DNA of 64,000 nt from Haliotis rubra. Its lineage: Eukaryota. Location of the stretch: assembly GCF_003918875.1 (NCBI RefSeq), contig NW_025767213.1:124001-188000 (forward strand), given 5' to 3'. Of this stretch, positions 3,596 through 21,551 are shown piece by piece. The notes beneath the pieces are model-generated. The model saw nothing but the letters and a program-made list of their open reading frames with translations, did not search any database and was not told the origin of the DNA. The position numbers and the translations under genes are program-made. How positions within the stretch are numbered: the first letter of the stretch is position 1; each line of letters begins with the position of its first letter.

Positions 3596-5046
3596 CAGTG
3601 TGTGTACCCCTGCTGTCAGTGTGTGTATCCCTGCTGTTAGTGTGTGTACCCCTGTTGTCAGTGTGTTTTCCCCTGTTGTCAGTGTGTGTACCCCTGCTGT
3701 CAGTGTGTGTACCCCTGCTGTCAGTGTGTGTACCCCTGCTGTCAGTGTGTGTACCCCTGTTGCCAGTGTGTGTACCCCTGTTATCAGTGTGTGTACCCCT
3801 GCTGTCAGTGTGTGTACCCCTGCTGTCAGTGTGTGTACCCCTGCTGTCAGTGTGTGTACCCCTGCTGTGAGTGTGTGTACCCTGCTGTCAGTGTGTGTGT
3901 ACCCCTGTTGCCAGTGTGTGTACCCCTGTTATCAGTGTGTGTACCCCTGCTGTCAGTGTGTGTACCCCTGCTTCCAGTGTGTGTACCCCTGCTGTTAGTG
4001 TGAGTACCCCTGTTGTCAGTGTGTGTACCCCTTCTGTCAGTATGTGTACTCCTGTTGTCAGTGTGTGTACCCCTGTTGTCAGTGTGTGTACCCCTGCTGT
4101 CAGTGTGTGTACCCCTGCTTCCAGTGTGTGTACCCCTGCTGTCAGTGTGTGTACCCCTGTTGTCAGTGTGTGTACCCCTTCTGTCAGTATGTGTACTCCT
4201 GTTGTCAGTGTGTGTACCCCTGTTGTCAGTGTGTGTACCCCTGCTGTCAGTGTGTGTACCCTGCTTCCAGTGTGTGTACCCCTGCTGTCAGTGTGTGTGT
4301 GTACCCCCTGCTTCCAGTGTGTGTACCCCTGCTGTCAGTGTGTGTACCCCTGTTGTCAGTGTGTACCCCTTCTGTCAGTATGTGTACCCCTGTTGTCAGT
4401 GTGTACCCCTGCTGTCAGTGTGTGTACCCCTGCTGTCAGTGTGTGTACCCCTGTTGTCAGTGTGTGTACCCCTGCTTCCAGTGTGTGTACCCCTTCTGTC
4501 AGTATGTGTACTCCTGTTGTCAGTGTGTGTACCCCTGCTGTCAGTGTGTGTGTACCCCTGCTGTCAGTGTGTGTACCTCTGTTGTCAGTGTGTGTACCCC
4601 TGCTGTGAGTGTGTGTACCCCTGCTGTCAGTGTGTGTACCCCTGCTGTCAGTGTGTGTACCCCTGCTGTGAGTGTGTGTACCCCTGCTGTCAGTGTGTGT
4701 ACCCCTGCTGTCAGTGTGTGTACCCCTGCTGTCAGTGTGTGTGTGTACCCCTTCTGTCAGTATGTGTACCCCTGTTGTCAGTGTGTGTACCCCTGCTGTC
4801 AGTGTGTGTGTACCCCTGCTGTCAGTGTGTACCCCTGCTGTCAGTGTGTGTACCCCCTGCTGCCAGTGTGTGTACCCCTGTTGTCAGTGTGTGTACCCCT
4901 GCTTCCAGTGTGTGTACCCCTGCTGTCAGTGTGTGTACCCCTGCTGTGAGTGTGTGTACCCCTGCTGTGAGTGTGTGTACCCCTGTTGTCAGTGTGTGTA
5001 CCCCTGTTGTCAGTGTGTGTACCCCTGCTGTGAGTGTGTGTACCCC
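3596..5046. repeat. 21-bp minisatellite (cagtgtgtgtacccctgctgt)n
   Basis: Direct tandem periodicity. Confidence 0.97.
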
Positions 5047-5410: not shown

Positions 5411-5802
5411 CAAAAACGTCAACTTTGGAACCTTTTTCCGAACCTCCTACTATTGTGCTGCATGATCACTTGCGGTCATAACAAGCTGTCATACTCTCAT
5501 CATTCAACACCGGTTGTCCCACATGATCGTTGGCGGGCATGACATATTCTCATGCTGTCATAATTCAACACCGGTTGTTATTTTCCCCAGTTGCATTAGT
5601 ATTGTCGTACAACTAGGATTGAGAAATTACAGTTTTGAAAATCGATGTTATTTCCGAGCATTCAATGCCATTTTGGAGAGTAACTCTATGTTATTGAAGC
5701 ACTGGGGAACGCATTCCTAAATAACAACAGAAGCATTTATCTATTGAGACATTTTATCTAATCAAGGTCAGATATTGTCAGTTCATTGATCTGGGTACGT
5801 TC

Positions 5803-8487
5803 TCACTCCTTCGTCGCTGCATCTGTAAACAACAAACAACTTTAGTAAGCTGTGTGAATGGTAAGCTGGTTTTAATTCCTTTTTAAAGTTTATTTCAAAT
5901 GTAAATCGTTATGTTTTCTTGTTCTGGGATGAAACCTGAAAATCATTAGACATTTTCCATGATGGCAAAACCCGCAAGTATGGTACTGACGGACCAGGGT
6001 TAACTATTGGGTGAATCTAAGATTCGAACCCATGGTCAGTGGAACAGCAGCAATTTAGAACACTGTGTCTACAGTGCATCCTCAAAAAGAAAAAATACGC
6101 CATGCATATTTTTAATGTTTCTCATCTCTTGCTTTTTGTGGACGGGCTTAAAACATGAATAAAAATTTTTTTTTAAATGTTGGCACTAATTGTGCATCTT
6201 CTTTTGTAAAATTTGAAATTTAAATGACCCAATAATGACTTTGAAATAATGTTTAATGTAGATTTAATCCCTTTGCTTCGAAAACAATGTATATAGATTG
6301 ATGAAGAAAGATCAAGATGAGCTGGTTCTAGAGTGGATGAAATGTTAGCGTACGCAGGGCATAAATTTCAATTTCGGGGGCCAAAACTGGCTTAAAAATA
6401 TTTTTAGTGTTTGAATTGTTTAAAGCAGTCAGGAGGTGGGAAACACAAGAGTGAGTGAGTGAGTGAGTTTAGTTTAGTTGTAAATAATCGACTCTGGACC
6501 TGACAATCCAGTTATCAACAGCATAAGAGTCGATCTACGCAATTGGGAACCGATGACCACCCGATCCCGTTAGTCGCCTTTCACGACAAGCATGGGTTGC
6601 TGAAGATCAATTCTAACCCGGACCTTCACGGGTGGGAAACACAAGAAAATATAGACAGCCATACCACGAAGACGTCAGTCCAAGAAAGTTCGACACTGTC
6701 AGTCTTTAAAAGCACCTACAGGCTGAATGTAATCGTGTTGACTTCTTTATTATACATTGGTGATGAATGGGCATGACGCGCTATGCATTATATAGCAGTG
6801 GTTATCCATAACATTCCTAGTCGTGTACACCAGCATTATTCATCATTTCAGTAAAGCTAATAAATAATAAGTGACCGAGTCAAAATAACTTTTAAGCATC
6901 AAGTTTAAACATTAACGATCATATTCTCATGTCTTGTATATAATTACGATAATATACACTTCCTTACTGTTATCAGCCGATGTCATCAACACTTTTACAT
7001 CTCTCGCATTGAATAACACCTCGTCCCGCGATTGGTCAATATCCCTTCCCTGTTTGATGTCTTCGCTCTCAAGATCTGAAACGAATCATGTTCAATTAAC
7101 CTATGTTGGTGATCTAGAGCCGTTCATACAGATATGATGCAATCACGTTAAATAGTGTATATAGAAACTAAGTGTATAAGGCGTAGATAGGTTAGAGGGG
7201 TTGATTATGACATCAAACGTTGTCACATGTTCTATTCCGATTTTGTTCAACCATGAACACTACGTAACACGTGTTGCTTAGACTAACTGATTTCGAATTT
7301 GTTTGGTTGGTTGGTTTGTTGTTTAACGCCACACAGTCCTTGGATGGGTGACCGTGTTTGGCAGTTTGACTCCTGAGAGTTTCTAGGACTTCACTTCTGC
7401 CCCACAACGACTGACTGACTGACTGACTGAATATGGTTTTACGCCGCTTTTAGCAATATTCCAGCAACATCACGGCGGGGGACACCAGAAATGGGCTTCA
7501 CACATGTACCCATGTGGGGATTCGAACCCGTGTCTTCGGCGTGACGAGCCAAAGCTTTAACCACTAGGCTAACAACACACACACACCCACCCCCACCCCC
7601 ACCCCCAACGAAGCACATGTGATACATGTGGTCTTACCTTAGGCAAGTGAGTTTGTTCAAAATTGCCTCGGTTCACCCAGCAGGATGGGTCATGTGACTG
7701 TAACCTTCTAACGCGTAACAGGCAGCTTGGGTTATCCGGGGTAATAATAATCAGATTCTGATTACAAGGTCCAGTGAGCAACTAGTCAGATAGATACTAG
7801 GCGCTAAATATATGAATTATTATCATTACACTCAGCAATATTCCAGCTATATGGCGGCGCTCTGTGAATCGAGTCTGGTCTAGACAATCCAGTGATCAAT
7901 AGAATGGGCATCGATATATCGATTGACTGTATAACCATATGATTAAGCTTTGTCTATTGCAGTTGCATTTTTACAAGCGATGTTTTTTATATTGAATCAC
8001 ACGTCAACCAGTGGAGGATATGCTAAATTAAATTACTAAATTAAATTAAACCTTCCGAAATTCCAAACGATTTTAGCAATTGTAAGACCTTGACATTGAC
8101 AGCAAAGCTGTTCAAAGACTATCAGTGCGAGCTGTTATCCTTAAATTCCTCACGTTACACATTTTGTTGAGTGCTTGTTCAGCAATGGATATCATGTGCA
8201 TATTGCATTAATAACGTATTTATATTCATTAGCCAGTGGATCCGCGACGACACCTTTGATGCTCTCTGCAGCAATACTATTTTTTTCTTGGAATTTCTTG
8301 TGAAACGTGGAGAAAGTTTAAGGCACTCACCTCTTCCATGTAACTTCGTCGTACTTGTTATCCACCGGGACCTATTCATCCTCCTAGTAATTCTCCTCCA
8401 ACTTCTCCTCCCACGCCACTTCCCGTTAGATGCGTCCAGACACACAAGGACCAGCAGCAGCAGCAACAACAAGGGCAGCAGTTTCAT
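5803..8487 (-). CDS. Gene A: spliced secreted cationic (antimicrobial-like) peptide precursor, 94 aa; coding exons 8487-8331, 7075-6968, 5822-5803
   Basis: Acceptor ttgttccag at 8500-8499 and ATG at 8487. Donor AGAG|gtgagt at 8330 (phase 1). Acceptor gtttcag then a 108-nt open exon ending ACA|gtaagg (phase 1). Acceptor ttgtttacag then ATGCAGCGACGAAGGAGTGA. Joined protein: MKLLPLLLLLLLVLVCLDASNG-KWRGRRSWRRITRRMNRSRWITSTTKLH-GR-DLESEDIKQGRDIDQSRDEVLFNARDVKVLMTSADNNAATKE*. Confidence 0.8.
6451..6633 (-). mobile_element. Family B element in the last intron of gene A
   Basis: 16-bp TSD ggtgggaaacacaaga at 6435 and 6631. Confidence 0.88.
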
Positions 8488-9606
8488 CACGCTCAGCTCT
8501 GGAACAACGTGAAGAGTGAAGCATCACTTTCATGGTCAGTATCAGGACAAACGCCAACTGTGTAAACCAGCTGTGGAAGCTGACACGCAACCAACAGAAC
8601 ATACATTAATCAGAGTACTGCTTGAGCTTTCAAGACTGAATTATGTGATTTAAGTTCGGCTTGCAAATAAGAAAACTAGTGATGGCACCACATGTAGCAC
8701 CTGCCACTCACACCAATTTCCAACAAATATTTGAGATGATTTGACATATAGTGAACAAAAGGAAATAATAAACACTACAGCTTAGAAATATCACAAGACA
8801 TTGTGTATGCACCACTTGTCACTAAAATGGTACATGTCTTTTATTGTTTAAAGACTTACTTCAGTTTCCTGATGGCGTTCAAAGACATACTTCAGTTTCC
8901 TGATGGCGTTCTGTGAAAAATCGGGTCAAGGTCAGACAATTAAATTATTGAAACAATGAGTATCGATTTACACAACTGAAAAAAAAATGATGACAGGCAT
9001 CTCATGTAGGTGAGTCTGGCCACCAAATCCCACTAGTCGCCTTTCATGGCTTCTTACGACCAGTTCTAGTCGGGAAGTTAACAACAGGGAAGAGGATAAT
9101 ACAAGCAGTGGGTGAAATCCAGTCGGGCCAGTAAATCTCCAGTCACTAGCCCGACTGGCTAGTGAATTTTCATGGGATCATTTTGTAAATATCTCTCAGA
9201 CTTGATCAGTTATAATACACTTTTAAATCCTGCAAGATTATGGCCTGATAAAAAATGTTCATCATATTAGCAGCTTAATGATGAAACCCGTGTCATGCCG
9301 ACAGTATCCTATTCTCATTTATTTTTGAAAACTTTTGCTTAGTTTCTACATTCAAATGTCGCGCAAGTGAATTATTTTGTGGGCTAGTAACTTTCAGGCA
9401 TAGCTGGCCCGACTGGCTAACAAAATTTGTAATGCTTGTTGAATGCAAACACTTTTTGGGGGAAACAATCTAAGTCTAAAAATATATTTTTGTATCTTAG
9501 CAAAAAATGTCACCAAATCCCTCATTTCTATTATTTTAAAACGCGCACTTACTCACACAAACTGTGAACCCGTAATATACACATAAACAACAACATATAT
9601 ACTCAC

Positions 9607-9710: not shown

Positions 9711-11189
9711 AGCGGTAACAGCGTTAACGTCACCGTGATTTTCAGGAGTAACCTACATTTCAAGGTGTGCAACTCAGATGCGATAAACATATGCTCTCAT
9801 TGAACAAACTGATTATCTCATGCCTACGGGGCTTTGGTGCAATCGACCAAACGGAGTCGAGCAGTAATACATGGGCTGTTGATTATTAATATTGTATAAC
9901 TGAATTATCTGTAAAATAAATGTGCTCATAGTATACCAAAATATCACTTCACTTTTTTTCTCATTTTGTCACATAAAAATATCTGAAGGTAGTGTTTCGA
10001 TATTATTGCCTGATGAGCTCTGAAATCTGATTTTCTTCACAGAAAGTGACCAGATACTAGTGAGTGATTGAGTGTGTGATTGAATGTGTGAGTAAGTGGT
10101 GTTTATATGTTAAAAATTACATACGACTCGTAGTTTTTAGCGCAATCGATACATCACTAAACGTAATCATGAAATCGCACCACTATATTGCCATTTACAG
10201 GGAGTAACCTTGAGTAATGATTTATTTCAACCTGCCTTGGAACAGATGTTCTCATAGACTCCAACTAGGACCCGACCCTTATCACCTTGTTGTATACTGT
10301 TGCAATATCGGTATATGATCAGGCGTGGACGTGATGGCAACAGGAGTACATTTCCTCATTAGCTGCTGTTGTTACCGATGATCAAACTACTACATGTAGT
10401 GAGATGACGGTGTTTCACCACTACTACTGAGCGTATTCGCTGCTACAGAAATGATGGCATATACATAGGGAATCTTCCATGCGTTGAGTATAATATCGGG
10501 TCTTTCCCAGGGCTTTCGAGAAGGTGACGATAGGCATATTATCGTTGAACATGAAACATGATGTTTTATCCGACATATGGAATGTCCTATTTTGTGCAAA
10601 TTTTGCGTAGTATGTTAAATTGAACTATTTAATTACAAATTTAAAACATTGAAACGGAAATTCTCTACCTAACACGTGTGTGTGTGTGTGTTTCACCACC
10701 CACTTACTATGTAGTTCTGTTTTTTAAACTTCAAACAAAAAATGGGAAAATATTTGAGATTAATAACAGTCTTTACGCTCTCTTAAGACAAACCGTAAAG
10801 CCTATCGACATATTTACGAGACCTTTGTAGGAAGCGAATGAACACATGAAGAAGCTAACCCACAGTTTTCTTCATAAATTACCACCTGCTATTTTCTGCC
10901 CTGCTTGTGTGAAACTAACGCCACTGAAAAGTCAAAATTATATATTTTCTTACAGAGCACACGCGTGATAGAGATATTTAGCGGGAAGGTAACACCTGCA
11001 TGAAGCAGTCTTGTCAAAGTGTTACGTTAACTGCAGCGAAAAATCGAGTGTTATGCTCACACTGTATACTGAAAGTATCATATTTCTAAAGAAAACATGA
11101 ATATAAGACATGAATTTAGGATACACTTACACATTCCACCAGTTAATAGTTTGGATCATTTTGTATGGTAACGTCATATAGGTTTAGTT

Positions 11190-11880
11190 CCGATTTTGAC
11201 AGTCCCAATCTTGACAGTGAAAATTCACACTTCTGTAATAGATCTAGCCATTTATCCCAATTTTGACAGTGAGCTCACCGGTCGTCCCATTTTTGACAGA
11301 GCTCGGCTCACACATGTTAATTAATCCCTGATTAGCCAGTGGTTGTGGGGGCTACTGTAACAGAGGACTAAAACAAGAAAGACTAAAGCTAAAACAGTTT
11401 ATTCTTGAAAGTCAATCACTTCAAAGTCACCAATCACTGAGCAACGCTTCCAGCCAGCACACTGCCACAGGCAGAAAGATATGACGCCACATCTCTGTCA
11501 CATGTCATGTATTCCAAACCAAGTTGGTACAAAGTTGCTGAAGCATTTTCAACACGGCGTCTCTTCATCTGTGTCTGTCCAAAAACAATGATCCTGCTAA
11601 CGCTGTTGTCATCTACCAGTAGAAAGTCTTCTCCTCGGTCTGTTGTAGCCCATTCTCCATCAAGCTGTAGTTATTGGGCGTCTTTTGGAGTACGTGGGAC
11701 CTTCTTGGTTCTTTGTCTGTTCAGACTTGACTCGATACTCTCGTACATCTGAAGACGCTGTAAAAAATGGGACACTACAGATTGTGGCACATCTCCGAGG
11801 AATGTTAACGATAGGACTAGTGAGGTTCTTTAGTTTGTATCTTACTTTATCATGACAGCCAGGACCCAACTGTGATCCAG
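11190..11880 (-). mobile_element. Mutator/MULE-like transposase remnant with subterminal repeats
   Basis: A minus frame reads SIESSLNRQRTKKVPRTPKDAQ*LQLDGEWATTDRGEDFLLVDDNSVSRIIVFG, typical of the segment preceding invertebrate MULE domains. Four cc.attttgacag-type repeats at 11190-11300. Confidence 0.5.
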
Positions 11881-11902
11881 TTGTCATTCTTGGTACAAAA
11901 TA

Positions 11903-13488
11903 TACTCAGAAGCAAAAAAACGTCAGTACGTATTAAAAATGAAATAAGCACTGTAATCAAATCATTACAGAAATGGACATAATAAGCCAATCAAAAACAT
12001 TTTTTGTGTACAATATCTTGACACATCAATGAATAACACTGCACAATTTCAAGACATTACGTGAACGTTTGCAGTCCATTCAGACTCTTGACTTCAGTAT
12101 CTAGTGTGACCACCACGAGCGGCACAGAGTGCACCAATCCATTGATTAAGGCCATTGGCCCCCGTAACCACACTCTGAGAAATGCAATAAATCGGCTGTG
12201 TTCGGCCTTGGTATGACATTACTCAGTCTCCTCTGAATTCCATCCCAAAGATGTTCAGTTGGGATTAAATCAGGACTAAGGGCTGGTCACTGCACAATGT
12301 TGACACCGTTCTGCTGTAGGAAGTCCCGTGTAACTCTGGCAGTATGGGCCTGGGCGTTATCATGCTTGAAACTGTTGTTCCGGTGACGTGCGAATTGTGG
12401 CATGACGTGGGGTCTGAGAGCTTGGTCGATGTAGCGCACCGCTGTGATGCCGCCTCCTCTCCATGGACCAAGGTTCTGGAACACCACAGGACCCACTCTC
12501 TGGTTCAGGCCTATTCCACCCCATGCCATGATGCTTTCACCTCCCCATGAGTCTCTTTCCATAACACATTGGTCTGAGTAACGCTTGCCACGTCGTCGCC
12601 ATGTTCTTGTTCTGCCATCTGCAGTTGATACGCAGTACCGACTCTCATCTGTGAACAGATCCATTGCCTGTAACGCCAGTTTTCGTAGACGTTCACGCCG
12701 ATGACGAGGGGTGAGGATAGGTCCAGGGTGAGGTCTACGGCAACGGAGGTTCCCGCTGTTAAGACGTCGGCGTACTGTATCTGTACTGATTGGTCTTCCG
12801 TGTGTTCCCACTGTCTGCGTGCTGTTTCGGATGCCTGCATGAAGGGATTCTGTACATGATGTTGCACAACATGGCGGTCTTGTGGTGACCCTTGAGAGTG
12901 GAGCGATCATTTGTGGTGTTGGTGGCCCGGAAACGTTGCTGCAGCCTGTAGATGGTCCGAACGTTGGCCTGGAAGTTATTAGCCAGCTTCAAGTCTTCCT
13001 AGCGCCTGGTTCCTCTGAGCTGTCGTGAGTCGCGGCATCCTGCTGACGTTGTAATGTGAACAGGGGCGTAGCTACCATTATAAAAAAAAGCCCGGGCTGA
13101 CACGTGATTTTTGCTAAAAAGGTTGGGCAAGCCCTCAATACTATCTAAATATAAAGCTTTGCAACCTATCGGGCTTACACGAGAAAAATGGCTTGCTACG
13201 CGCCTGGCGAATGTTTCTACCAGGTTGGGGTGCATTTTATAGGGCCGGTCCTTGTGAACAGCACGTGCAGCATGAGTTGCATGAAACACATGGAGAACAC
13301 CGTACCATCTCCGAAGTCAGGTTGCGTTTTTGAGACCATTTCCTGGGTTCAATTCTTAGTTTATGAAGGAATGTCAGGTAAAGTTGGAGATGTTGTCAAA
13401 AATAAACAATCAAACCATTAAATGAGTTTACTGTTATACGTTTATGCGAAGGAAAATTCCAAACTGACGTTTCTTTTGCTGCTTAGTA
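11903..13488 (-). mobile_element. Tc1/mariner DNA transposon with decayed transposase (13038-12094)
   Basis: TIRs of about 25 bp (TACTCAGAAGCAAAAAAACGTCAGT / ACTGACGTTTCTTTTGCTGCTTAGTA) flanked by TA. The transposase starts MPRLTTAQRNQALGRLEAG, contains FTDESRY, HDNAQAH and NPTEHLWD, and ends GGHTRY*. Stops and frameshifts are present. Confidence 0.92.
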
Positions 13489-14618
13489 TATATAGTCACT
13501 GAGACAGCTTCGTTTCAACTTAGATGCTGATATTTGTGATGCCTCACGTGCAAGACGTGTAATTAAACATTGCCATATGGCGCCTTATGTTGTGTAATTT
13601 TTAGTACATATATAAATCAACCTTATTAAATTATGTACTGAATGTACTGAATGTACTGAATGCACTGAATTATGTACAGGTAAACATCGATAAAACGCTT
13701 TACATAAACACGTTAATAAAATGAGCAAAATCTTAAAGTGAACTCTGCTGTACGAGATATTTTCATAGGTTATGGAGGGAGTTTTGTCGCATTTATTGTA
13801 CAAGTGCAATAGCTGGAAATTACAAATATACTCGTACAAGCAACAGGTGCGTACTGATGTGGAAATACTTAATGCAGAACATCCCGGCCAGAAATACGTA
13901 CTTACCCTCTACCAAACATTTAACGAGTACAATATATATCAAATCTCATTTGTTAAACCTCCATGACCCCTATTCATCACTGCGTTAAAGTACCCCACTT
14001 GCTATTACCTTGTGGGGTAATGGTTGGCTTTGCGCCCTTTCCTAACACATGGGCCACAAAGCAATATTTTGTGTTACAAAGCACGGGGCAATACGATGAC
14101 CGGCAGTGAATGAGTGTGTATGGAGCAGCGTTGTATATAGTTAGTATGGCGTTGCCCCAAACCACATGAAAATGCAACAAATCGTTCAAAATCAAAATAT
14201 CCCATTTATAATGAAACATAGATATGTAACTATTTGCTATTTGACTTGCTAGAATGTCACAGATGTACAATCTTGACGTAAAACACTGACACTGGGGTTG
14301 TTGTTTTTATAATGTTTTTGTGTTTTTCATTGAATTCTACAACCCACACTCTACAAAACAACTCATCTATGTATCTCGGTTGTAGTGTTACCTCATCAGC
14401 AACATATAAAACTGACACATCCTGTTCACACAACATGGAAAGTGATTTAGTGCGCATAAAAGCCAGCCTCCATGCTCCATTGCCCAATAATCATTTCTCG
14501 CACCTTTCCAACGCAGAGGACGGTATCACCTTTCATGAAGGACCATTTTGTAAATAGTTAATGTAGGTGTAAATAGTTTTTTAACACTGTCTCTCTCTAT
14601 ACATACTAAACATGGGTG

Positions 14619-19293: not shown

Positions 19294-21551
19294 ATGAAGA
19301 TAGCTCTGGTGTTTCTCCTGCTGGTGGTTGTCTTCGTAATCCAGGACACAGATTCCTGGAGAAGAAGGAGAAGAAGAAGGTGGTTCAGAGCTCCAAGAAT
19401 ACGCATCAGGAAGATATTCCGACCCGTCACTAAAGTCATAAAGAAGATAAGGCCGGTGTTGAAGAAAATTATCAAACCCATCGTCCAAGGAGTCAAGGCA
19501 GTTGTCAAACCCATTTTGAAACCATTACAGGCAAAGGTGTGTGCCCCGCTCCAGTGCCTAACTGGCCGAGACCTAACTTGGCAGACGGAGCCTGACAATT
19601 CTGTGGAAGAAAGAGGCACTGGAAAAGATCTGGAAGAACAGTCTGACAAGATGATGACAAAGAAGAGCGCAAGAGATGGAGGACTGGTTGGAGATGTACG
19701 ACAAGGAGGGTCGAGTCTTGGAGGGTCTGAATGAGCTGGTGAATACCAAGCGGGACGTGAGGGAACTTCACCAAGTCCTGCAGGATCCTGTCAGGTCCAA
19801 GAGGTTGTTGAAGTACGTGGGCAAGGCGCTGTGTGGAAAGACCGGCGGTAGCCAGGATGGAAGTGAAGATGGCCAGGGTCCGGAAGAGGACGTTGATCAA
19901 GTTGTCACTGTCCCTTACACTGTCATTGAGTACGTGACAGCAGCTCCTGCCGGTGAGTGATTATGTAAATCGCGGCCAAAAGGGTAAAGAACATTATAGA
20001 GCGTTATACATATGGTATCAATATTGATTTTGTCGATGACAAGTGTTCTCCATTCAAAGTTTAACCAACCAAACAAAGATAACGGCTGTGCAGTGTTTTC
20101 TACTTTCGATTTACATCTTAGACGTCATATGATATAAGGTCATCCGTAATGTGTTACTCATTTGAAACCTCAGCAAGGAAGAGAGCGGGTTGGCGTAACA
20201 AATCATATAATATAAAAAATGTTTTAAACTATTCTTCACTAATTGTGTAACTATTTTGTGAGATTTTAAAATGCGGGTTGGCGTCACAAATCAAATGATA
20301 TAAAAAATGTTTTAAACTATTCTTCACTAATTGTGTAACTATTTTGTGAGATTTTAAAATGTAGATCACGGCTACATGCAATGTTTTCGATTCACATCTA
20401 AAACATCATATTGATATTAGGTAATATATAATGTTGTATGTGATGCCCATGTAAGAAACAAAGACATGACAAGAGCGGACGTGCGTAAACAATAAATTAG
20501 TATATAGAATATTACAAAAACTATTCTTCACTAATTGTATAACTTCTTTCAGATTTTAAAATGTGGATCACGGCTACATGCAATTTTTCTACTTTCGATT
20601 CACATCTAAAACGTCATACTGATATAGGGCATCTGTGATGTTGTATGCAGTACTCATTTATTAACTTAGCCAGGAAGAGAGCGGGCGGTCGTAAAATGAA
20701 TCATTGTGAAAATATTTTAACAATTATTCTTCACCAATTGTGTTTTAACATATTCTATGAGATTTAAAACTTTAATCACTGGTTATAATTTTAAACTAAT
20801 TTTTCATGAAGATCGAGTCATGTTGGTTCAGAAACATTTTTAATTACAGTTAAAAAAAATATAAATCAAACTGACCTGGGATTTTTATGAGTGTGCGAGA
20901 GTAAGAGTTTTTCTATTACATCAGGGCACAGATTTCGTTAGACGGTTAAAATAGAGATAAGAAATTTATTTTACAATTTCACGTCGGGGTGAAAATACAG
21001 GGCCGCCATGCGGGAGATGGGAAACACATTCGAGAATATGTATATCCACGATAAACACATTTATATGCAAATTGTAGTGGCAGGTGCTACCGGTAGAGCA
21101 GGACAACCTTTCCGTGAACAACACATATTTTCAGTGACGCTTTAATATAGTTTCAACTACTTCGAACGTCATGTAGAATCGATTTCAGCAGATATTGAGA
21201 GTGATTTTCTATCTGACTGTGACGCAAGCCATAGTGCCTAATCCACATTTTTGTAATCTCTGCCAGGCTTCTGTAATACACAACCTTTAAACAAGCAAAT
21301 CTAGTTTTCTTAGGTTCAGTTTCTCAGTTTCCAAGGCCTATGAGATAGTTGGGGGTTTTTTTCAGTTTAAATGGAGTTATTTGGTACTATCAGAATTTTA
21401 TAGTTTAGATAACATAGCGTTAGTCTATGTAAGCGAGTAATCGTTAGTTAACTATACTTACATTATAAATGTATTTTATAACTGTGAGTTAAACCATCCT
21501 TCCGAAACTGAAGATATAAAATTTAATTTTGGATACTTTTTTTCAGGGTAG
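19294..21551 (+). CDS. Gene B: secreted multi-peptide cationic (antimicrobial-like) precursor, about 220 aa after correcting a +1 frameshift near 19663; exons 19294-19952 and 21547-21551
   Basis: Signal peptide MKIALVFLLLVVVFVIQDTDS, then a 69-aa peptide (13 R, 11 K, no D/E) followed by GR-DL. ORFs 19294..19734 and 19676..19960 join if one A at 19663/19664 is removed, giving MMTKR-AQEMEDWLE. Donor GCCG|gtgagt at 19953, acceptor ttttttcag|GG TAG at 21546, AATAAA at 21605-21610. Confidence 0.8.

Follow-up and report, generated by a model that had tools for sequence, protein, structure and literature searches.

Gene A of Haliotis rubra and an abalone-restricted family of secreted prepropeptides that resembles host-defence peptide precursors

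A 64,000-nucleotide (nt) stretch of the Haliotis rubra genome (contig NW_025767213.1, positions 124,001 to 188,000, assembly GCF_003918875.1; hereafter the window, which contains no N) carries on its minus strand gene A, a real spliced gene with at least three coding exons, a point on which we have very little doubt. The gene is apparently unannotated. Sequence comparison places it, as a derived member, in a multigene family of small secreted prepropeptides, so far found only in abalone, that was previously uncharacterised and looks like a family of host-defence peptide precursors. The best explanation of gene A, which we adopt tentatively, is that it encodes a secreted prepropeptide processed and amidated at a G-R/D junction (slashes mark intron borders and cleavage sites throughout) to give a polycationic, host-defence-like peptide.

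The region between positions 5600 and 8700 was read on the minus strand. Scripted joining of three segments (8487-8331 + 7075-6968 + 5822-5803) gave a 285-nt open reading frame (ORF) of 94 amino acids (aa), interrupted by two GT/AG introns, both in phase 1. The gene model comprises the following elements (P0001 to P0008 are related proteins, introduced below; SINE, short interspersed nuclear element; UTR, untranslated region):

8487-8331, minus strand: exon 1, 157 nt, with donor G/GTGAGT.
8487-8485, minus strand: start codon, from the ORF translation.
8422..8487, minus strand: predicted signal peptide of 22 aa ending in ...CLDASNG, from the translation and its alignment with the signal peptides of P0001-P0008.
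8338..8421, minus strand: proposed mature peptide, a 28-aa polycationic Trp/Arg-rich segment with a net charge of +11, from translation and composition.
8332..8367, minus strand: RW[IL]xSTTKLH followed by Gly-Arg, which may signal amidation and cleavage; unchanged across gene A, P0001 and P0002.
7076..8330, minus strand: intron 1, phase 1, GTGAGT...TTTCAG, with SINE-like repeats at about 7215-7940.
7075-6968, minus strand: exon 2, exactly 108 nt, encoding the acidic tail; acceptor TTTCAG/, donor A/GTAAGG.
7061-7026, minus strand, within exon 2: degenerate EF-hand loop DIKQGRDIDQSR followed by its exit helix, as placed by hhalign against EF-hand tails.
5823..6967, minus strand: intron 2, phase 1, GTAAGG...TTTACAG, with a SINE-like repeat at about 6368-6730.
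5803..5822, minus strand: coding part of exon 3, ...NAATKE and stop (TGA, last base 5803), acceptor TTTACAG/; no other part of the model is less certain.
5516..5802, minus strand: probable 3' UTR, 88.9% identical to the 3' region of the paralogue.

The join of three exons with phase-1 boundaries and an open middle exon of 108 nt had been proposed in a preliminary description of the stretch; it was reproduced exactly, and the relatives use the same exon 1/exon 2 junction. Its remark that the mechanical ORF list runs through the first donor likewise proved correct (ORF 8179-8490).

Homologues of gene A exist, which rules out a chance ORF. The sole match to exon 1 (E = 4e-5) was P0001 (XP_046585578.1), an H. 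rubra protein of 118 aa annotated as uncharacterized. It is the product of a tandem paralogue (A2), which sits just beyond the window edge, some 9 kb downstream of gene A and on that same strand, at positions 10001-13877 of locus L001 (contig QXJH01000052.1, assembly GCA_003918875.1); this locus is 100% identical to window positions 6372-1 over 6372 bases. P0001 also matched (E = 1.9e-19) P0002 (XP_067675187.1), an uncharacterized protein of 112 aa from H. asinina. Both are annotated with the same layout as gene A, exon 1 ending in ...KLHGR plus G/GTGAGT and exon 2 beginning at TTTCAG/AT. The gene A and A2 loci are collinear, with identities of 92.6% over exon 2 and its flanks, 88.9% over exon 3 and the 3' UTR, 68-76% over the introns and about 70% in the exon 1 region. 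The A2 head carries a Met/Arg/Lys low-complexity insert and P0002 likewise has Met/Lys/Arg runs; gene A is without some 20-24 residues that are found in both proteins.

The predicted exons were also recovered in X23, a 33-Mb run from a closely related abalone other than H. rubra, whose "RNA?" label is a guess. Outside repeats, X23 depth was confined to predicted exons, namely exon 2 with exact borders and the 5' part of exon 1. A 355-nt contig matched the region through its letters 246-354 at 6969-7077 only, an interval that corresponds to exon 2 plus two nucleotides (AG), since the end of a spliced exon 1 would match those bases too. Two 97-nt contigs (depth 22 and 47) lay on 8408-8498 and wholly accounted for the depth of 9.79 in the bin 8304-8424. 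Unique intron bins had a depth of 0. As single-copy genomic DNA cannot assemble at 33 Mb, this is the pattern expected from spliced RNA. X23 contigs resembling gene A exon 1 (95%), and only about 80% like that of the paralogue, were abundant. The SINE-like repeats of the two gene A introns, at 6368-6730 and 7215-7940, reached enormous contig depth in all four runs, with thousands of repeat-to-repeat joints.

The DNA-like run X4, from the same species as X23, lacked 3 nt, in frame, in exon 1 (at about 8410) and 13 nt at the exon 2 end (6969-6981); the latter deletion is shared with H. rubra A2, whereas exon 2 was undeleted in the RNA-like X23. Polymorphism, gene conversion between paralogues or a paralogue transcript could account for this discrepancy.

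The 3' end of the coding sequence is labile across the three genes. Exon 2 of A2 lacks the last 13 nt and measures 95 nt, so that exon 3 is entered in phase 0 (...IMRRRSENVPKSVN); exon 2 of H. asinina measures 109 nt, leading to phase 2, and phase 1 applies in gene A. Each of the three frames of the homologous exon 3 is therefore in use in one of the three genes, which indicates that the extreme tail is without constraint at the protein level. Comparison of the exon 2 ends (...TSAGD in H. asinina, ...TSADN in gene A) suggests that the longer exon 2 is ancestral. Exon 3 and the extreme C-terminus, found on no RNA contig, are the weakest part of the preliminary model.

Gene A, A2 and the H. asinina gene have in common a conserved stretch of about 150 nt upstream of the ATG, and gene A probably has a 5'-UTR exon there, although this assignment of the block is one that we infer. 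Four features were recognised in this part:

8488..8640, minus strand: conserved upstream block, a putative 5'-UTR exon or promoter, kept in gene A, the paralogue and H. asinina.
8498-8488, minus strand: 5' UTR stretch of 11 nt, the X23 contigs ending exactly at 8498.
8500-8499, minus strand: AG of an acceptor-like TTCCAG/ located 11 nt before the ATG, conserved in gene A, A2 and H. asinina.
8604-8499, minus strand: candidate short 5'-UTR intron, with a donor GTATGT at 8604 found by donor scan.

Two out-of-frame upstream ATGs (8522-8533, minus strand) open a 58-aa ORF that overlaps the start codon, and would be removed by splicing if the 5'-UTR intron is real. No canonical poly(A) signal (AATAAA) was found downstream of gene A.

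No database protein corresponding to gene A was matched, either by the word-based exon 1 search (56-178 aa) or by the length-free profile search, the spliced 94-aa sequence itself not having been used as a query. The term "hidden", applied to this precursor in the preliminary description, is thus apt for the gene A copy and inapt for the family, whose paralogues are present in RefSeq as uncharacterized proteins.

A profile built from gene A, P0001 and P0002 was run against 1.84 billion representatives (exhaustive hidden Markov model search) and returned only Haliotis proteins. Two Haliotis representatives had E-values of 0.001 or less, with P0003 (H. rufescens) at 1.6e-8. Used as a query, P0003 retrieved P0004 and P0005 (H. 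asinina), P0006 and P0007 (H. rubra, on other contigs) and P0008 (H. cracherodii), all of them annotated as uncharacterized; its BLASTP match to P0002 had an E-value of 8e-7. The proteins share a similar signal peptide, a head with two Trp residues separated by an Arg-rich run, W-(Arg-rich, 4-8 residues)-W, an invariant G-R-D and an acidic tail. Across the eight aligned members, the invariant positions were G-R-D, a head Trp and the tail DQ/AR.

The tails of the more distant relatives point to the origin of the acidic tail of gene A. Those of P0003-P0007 contain two canonical 12-residue EF-hand loops (such as DLNKDGVIDQSE) with their exit helices; P0003 scored 24.6 bits against the Pfam EF-hand_1 cut-off of 25.4, P0006 has precomputed EF-hand matches, and the family profile retrieved calmodulin-related chains from the PDB (best E = 4e-5). 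Pfam found nothing in P0001 or P0002. When gene A exon 2 was aligned with the EF-hand tails (hhalign), 31 gapless columns covering loop 1 and its exit helix were obtained (probability 71%, E = 3.8e-5). The loop DIKQGRDIDQSR has K, G, R and R at positions 3, 5, 6 and 12, respectively; with ligand positions 3, 5 and 12 and Gly 6 all missing, it does not qualify as a functional EF-hand (PF00036), whereas P0003-P0006 have oxygen ligands at 1, 3, 5 and 12 and Gly at 6, as functional loops do. Gene A has no second EF-hand. Taken together, the alignments show that the acidic tail of gene A is a decayed first EF-hand. The "acidic propiece" of the preliminary description is indeed acidic (42 aa, net charge -5), while the EF-hand origin of the tail, the family and the constrained motif described below had all been missed.

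The junction between head and tail (HGR/D in gene A) carries most of the argument for processing. A phase-1 intron falls at GR/D in gene A, P0001 and P0002, and the intron of P0003, P0006 and P0007 lies 4-7 codons upstream, so the invariance of G-R-D is not a splice-site constraint. Two further tandem copies of the family were found on another H. rubra contig, outside the listed gene calls:

L005:22409-23016 (QXJH01000645.1): family copy.
L005:28245-28851 (QXJH01000645.1): family copy.

Both have a W-R-R...GLGLL head and a phase-1 intron three codons earlier, at G/KRD; the junction reads ...GLGLL-G/K-R-D and is followed by the canonical EF-hand loop DANMDGTIDQSE. These copies look like precursors of classic amidated amphipathic peptides. 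Their G-K-R-D is a canonical signal for amidation and dibasic cleavage, and at the sequence level nothing speaks more strongly for the invariant G-R-D being a processing site. Together with gene A, they bring to at least three the H. rubra copies that appear to have been left uncalled, which serves as a warning for annotation.

The h-region of the gene A signal peptide is poly-Leu, and positions -3 and -1 are occupied by Ser and Gly. Signal cleavage after ...SNG, as first proposed, fits the -3/-1 rule and aligns with the ...EG/W site of the relatives. The composition given for the 28-mer (9 R, 2 K, 3 W and no D, E or C; net charge +11) was confirmed by count, and its amide has a monoisotopic mass of 3680.07. 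The claim of a 28-aa amidated product fared less evenly: its Gly-Arg lies at the family-invariant G-R-D, extended to G-K-R-D in two copies, but the site in gene A is monobasic and internal sites are present, so the product may not be exactly the 28-mer.

Selection differed sharply along the precursor (Nei-Gojobori ratios of non-synonymous to synonymous substitution rates, dN/dS, from small and noisy counts). Between gene A and A2, dN/dS was 0.19 for the signal peptide, 1.0 for the variable head (dN = 0.44, dS = 0.44, with indels of up to 24 aa), 0.03 for RW[IL]xSTTKLHGR (dN = 0.037, dS = 1.27; five synonymous and one non-synonymous change) and 0.34 for the exon 2 tail; for the same motif against H. 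asinina it was 0.04-0.14. The N-terminal part of the head is hypervariable among paralogues and orthologues. This pattern implies that the head keeps its composition and charge and not its sequence, and that conservation within the subfamily is tight over the twelve or so residues preceding the junction.

The best 18-residue helical moment of the gene A head was 0.72, compared to 0.44 in shuffled sequences (p = 0.028). Moments above those of shuffles were also obtained for P0003, which is strongly amphipathic (p < 0.0005), and for the head of gene B, a neighbouring gene in the window described further on (p = 0.016). AlphaFold modelled P0002 with the eight-sequence alignment as a single long helix running through the signal peptide and head (predicted local distance difference test, pLDDT, 64-82), with a low-confidence tail; for P0003 as a single sequence, the pLDDT of 57 was too poor for a fold search.

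According to our preferred explanation, the signal peptide would be removed after ...SNG, a convertase would cut after the Arg of G-R/D, a carboxypeptidase would take off this Arg and peptidylglycine alpha-amidating monooxygenase would turn the Gly into a C-terminal amide. A polycationic Trp/Arg peptide of up to 28 aa would be released, and would most likely bind polyanionic surfaces, for example microbial membranes, as a host-defence effector. During passage through the secretory pathway, the acidic tail would serve to neutralise the cationic head or to escort it, and would be shed afterwards, and the head would be left to diversify freely with its conserved ...STTKLH-amide end retained. Considered separately, processing at G-R/D appears evenly poised between true and false, and a host-defence role of gene A is plausible at a somewhat lower level; an antimicrobial function of its product is what we infer from these features.

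Several observations weigh against this explanation. The G-R site of gene A is monobasic, without an upstream basic residue at P4, P6 or P8, and the 28-mer itself contains five internal convertase-type sites (GRR, WRR, TRR, RMNR and NRSR), at which it could be fragmented. The helical-wheel analysis suggested in the preliminary description gave a divided answer: the moment exceeds that of shuffles, but the gene A 28-mer is weakly amphipathic and very hydrophilic (mean Eisenberg H of -0.73), and the P0001 and P0002 heads are not amphipathic. Short C-terminal motifs under strong purifying selection, as here, are seen more typically in receptor ligands than in membrane-active peptides, and the tail of the relatives looks like a functional Ca-binding domain, which argues for more than a discarded propiece. 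The support for expression comes from a species other than H. rubra, in a run whose RNA label is guessed. Of the exon 2 contig, the 245 letters upstream of the match fall outside gene A exon 1, so that the transcript may come from a paralogue, and no X23 contig was found on exon 3 or the 3' UTR. Literature searches with LOC numbers, XP numbers and sequence motifs found no paper mentioning these proteins.

A more ambitious alternative gives the EF-hands a role in the precursor. The family may form a new class of host-defence precursors in which a calmodulin-like EF-hand pair acts as an anionic, Ca2+-responsive pro-domain, serving as intramolecular chaperone or inhibitor of a basic amphipathic Trp/Arg peptide that would be freed at the G-(K)-R/D amidation site. 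In gene A, as a derived member, the EF-hand would then have been reduced by decay to a bare acidic spacer, and the new conserved ...STTKLH-amide end would have become fixed. Basic amphipathic helices are classic ligands of calmodulin. We regard this scheme, both for the family and for the place of gene A in it, as unlikely, if still the strongest of the alternatives.

Less probable again is that the protein stays uncleaved and is secreted as a zwitterion, its head polybasic and its tail acidic and Ca-binding, to work in the extracellular matrix, mucus or a shell-forming compartment and bind mineral, polyanions or Ca2+, G-R-D being a structural hinge before the EF-hand. The canonical loops retained by the relatives and the Met/Lys/Arg low-complexity runs of P0001 and P0002 speak for it, and mollusc shell matrices are known to include small secreted EF-hand proteins as well as low-complexity proteins of a basic or Met-rich kind. 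Yet the gene A loop has lost positions 3, 5 and 12 and Gly 6 with the frame open and the splice sites intact, the G-K-R-D of two copies is a textbook processing signal, and a C-terminal tail read in three frames by three genes is unlike a structural domain. As for a shell-matrix protein in particular, the 28 files supplementing the proteome of H. laevigata nacre and prismatic shell contained none of the family peptide strings, which is weak negative evidence.

The constrained motif raises a reading that we judge improbable to a similar degree, that of a hormone- or neuropeptide-like precursor. Its product would be W[IL]xSTTKLH-amide (1084.60 Da in gene A), freed at the preceding Arg, with the Arg-rich stretch as a variable spacer. 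RW[IL]xSTTKLHGR comprises the only strongly constrained residues (dN/dS of 0.03-0.14, dS being saturated), and is invariant in three genes from two species; the W...KLH piece within it has basic residues on both flanks, with a Gly before the downstream Arg. On the other hand, the motif is missing from the rest of the family, where only G-R-D is kept, no relatives beyond Haliotis were returned by the profile search, and it is the W-(R)n-W head motif that is maintained across the family. Moreover, the spacers of neuropeptide precursors are usually acidic and not hyper-basic, and it is unusual for neuropeptides to show tandem duplication, indels or a head evolving in a neutral-to-diversifying way.

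Gene A might also be a decaying duplicate of a real family that makes no contribution of its own, an explanation that seems to us quite unlikely. It is without the Met-rich segment (the 20-24 residues missing relative to P0001 and P0002), the frame of its exon 3 differs from both, no database protein corresponds to it, and the copy in the sister species has 13-nt and 3-nt indels. Against such decay stand an unbroken ORF, signal peptide and constrained motif and the full set of four splice sites; moreover, the terminal 13 nt of exon 2 look ancestral, contigs of the gene A exon 1 type are abundant in X23, and the upstream block is conserved.

The least probable of the alternatives is a gamete or reproductive secretory polycation evolving fast by sexual selection, comparable to acrosomal lysin and sp18: it is confined to abalones, present in tandem duplicates, quick to diverge, secreted and highly cationic, and in abalone sperm, proteins of very high positive charge (+12 to +24) are stored alongside an anionic partner (PMC6952181), but no similarity to lysin, sp18 or FITZAP was found. 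The acrosomal protein FITZAP/sp6 was ruled out as a candidate, being anionic with an N-terminal poly-Asp.

Among known systems, the closest architectural analogue of gene A is the mussel myticalin/modiocalin family (Mytilus, Modiolus), linear cationic antimicrobial peptides that have been tested and are expressed in the gill (PMC5577615, PMC12294457). Gene A and the myticalins have in common a signal peptide, a strongly cationic Cys-free peptide and a C-terminal extension that is anionic (PMC5577615, PMC12294457), as well as a Gly before the basic site, read as an amidation signal, with a phase-1 intron right after it (PMC5577615). A 5'-UTR intron just before the ATG is documented in myticalins and suggested in gene A, and both families are lineage-restricted, tandem, hypervariable and multigenic. 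The differences lie in the heads (Trp/Arg(/Met)-rich, compared to Pro/Arg/Tyr-rich in myticalins), in the site (monobasic G-R, compared to dibasic), in the EF-hand origin of the anionic extension, in the host, a gastropod and not a mytilid, and in the activity, tested for myticalins and predicted for gene A. No similarity to myticalins was detectable in the profile search, which gave Haliotis proteins only and was made without a direct pairwise comparison; gene A is accordingly not counted as a member of the myticalin/modiocalin family.

With calmodulin-like EF-hand pairs (PF00036 / PF13499), the tails of the relatives share the two loops, and gene A exon 2 shares loop 1 and its exit helix. 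Unlike calmodulin-like proteins, the family is secreted, has at most two EF-hands, and carries them fused behind a polycationic peptide.

Short Trp/Arg-rich antimicrobial peptides of the indolicidin, tritrpticin and lactoferricin type combine, like the gene A peptide, Trp and Arg with no acidic residues, no Cys and a possible C-terminal amide. They derive from cathelicidin or lactoferrin precursors, and the gene A peptide is longer and far more hydrophilic, with a polar conserved C-terminus. The amidated neuropeptide precursors of molluscs resemble gene A in having a signal peptide, a conserved short peptide, a Gly plus basic residue and then an acidic region; gene A differs from them in its lack of orthologues outside the genus, its hyper-basic variable region, its tandem paralogues and its single peptide copy. 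Molluscidin, also considered, is Lys/Ala-rich and not Trp/Arg-rich. The known abalone antimicrobial peptides that a 2025 review lists are molluscidin, macins and haemocyanin- and LGBP-derived peptides, all of other kinds than gene A.

Very few linear, cysteine-free cationic defence peptides are known from molluscs. Should the peptides of this family be active, they would provide naturally diversified and easily synthesised Trp/Arg peptides from a farmed animal prone to vibriosis and herpesvirus, and the family would illustrate an unusual course of evolution, in which a Ca-binding EF-hand was recruited as an acidic pro-region and then decayed.

Gene B, on the opposite strand of the window (19294-19735), is oriented divergently with respect to gene A, with a G-R-D further on, and its head suggests that it is a member of the same superfamily:

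19294..19533, plus strand: gene B head, with a predicted signal peptide and W-R7-W..., matched by tblastn of P0006 (56% identity over 32 aa, E = 3.5e-7 within the window).

An EF-hand exon for gene B was not found by tblastn within the window. A called gene with a 244-aa product spans locus L001 in full (1-23877, plus strand, corresponding to the window minus strand running down from at least 6372), on the same strand as gene A and A2, and both may be nested in an intron of this larger gene. As the 244-aa gene is absent from the length-unrestricted profile result, it probably does not contain the gene A exons.

Within intron 1 of gene A, positions 7505-7570 look tRNA-derived by eye, but ARAGORN calls no tRNA, and a tRNA-derived element was not retained there. 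Between genes A and B, a 207-aa ORF (12287-12910, minus strand) looks like a remnant of a Tc1/mariner-type transposase. Just downstream of gene A, a 21-bp minisatellite (3596-5046; about 69 copies, 88% matches) yields long spurious Cys/Val/Pro-rich ORFs on both strands.

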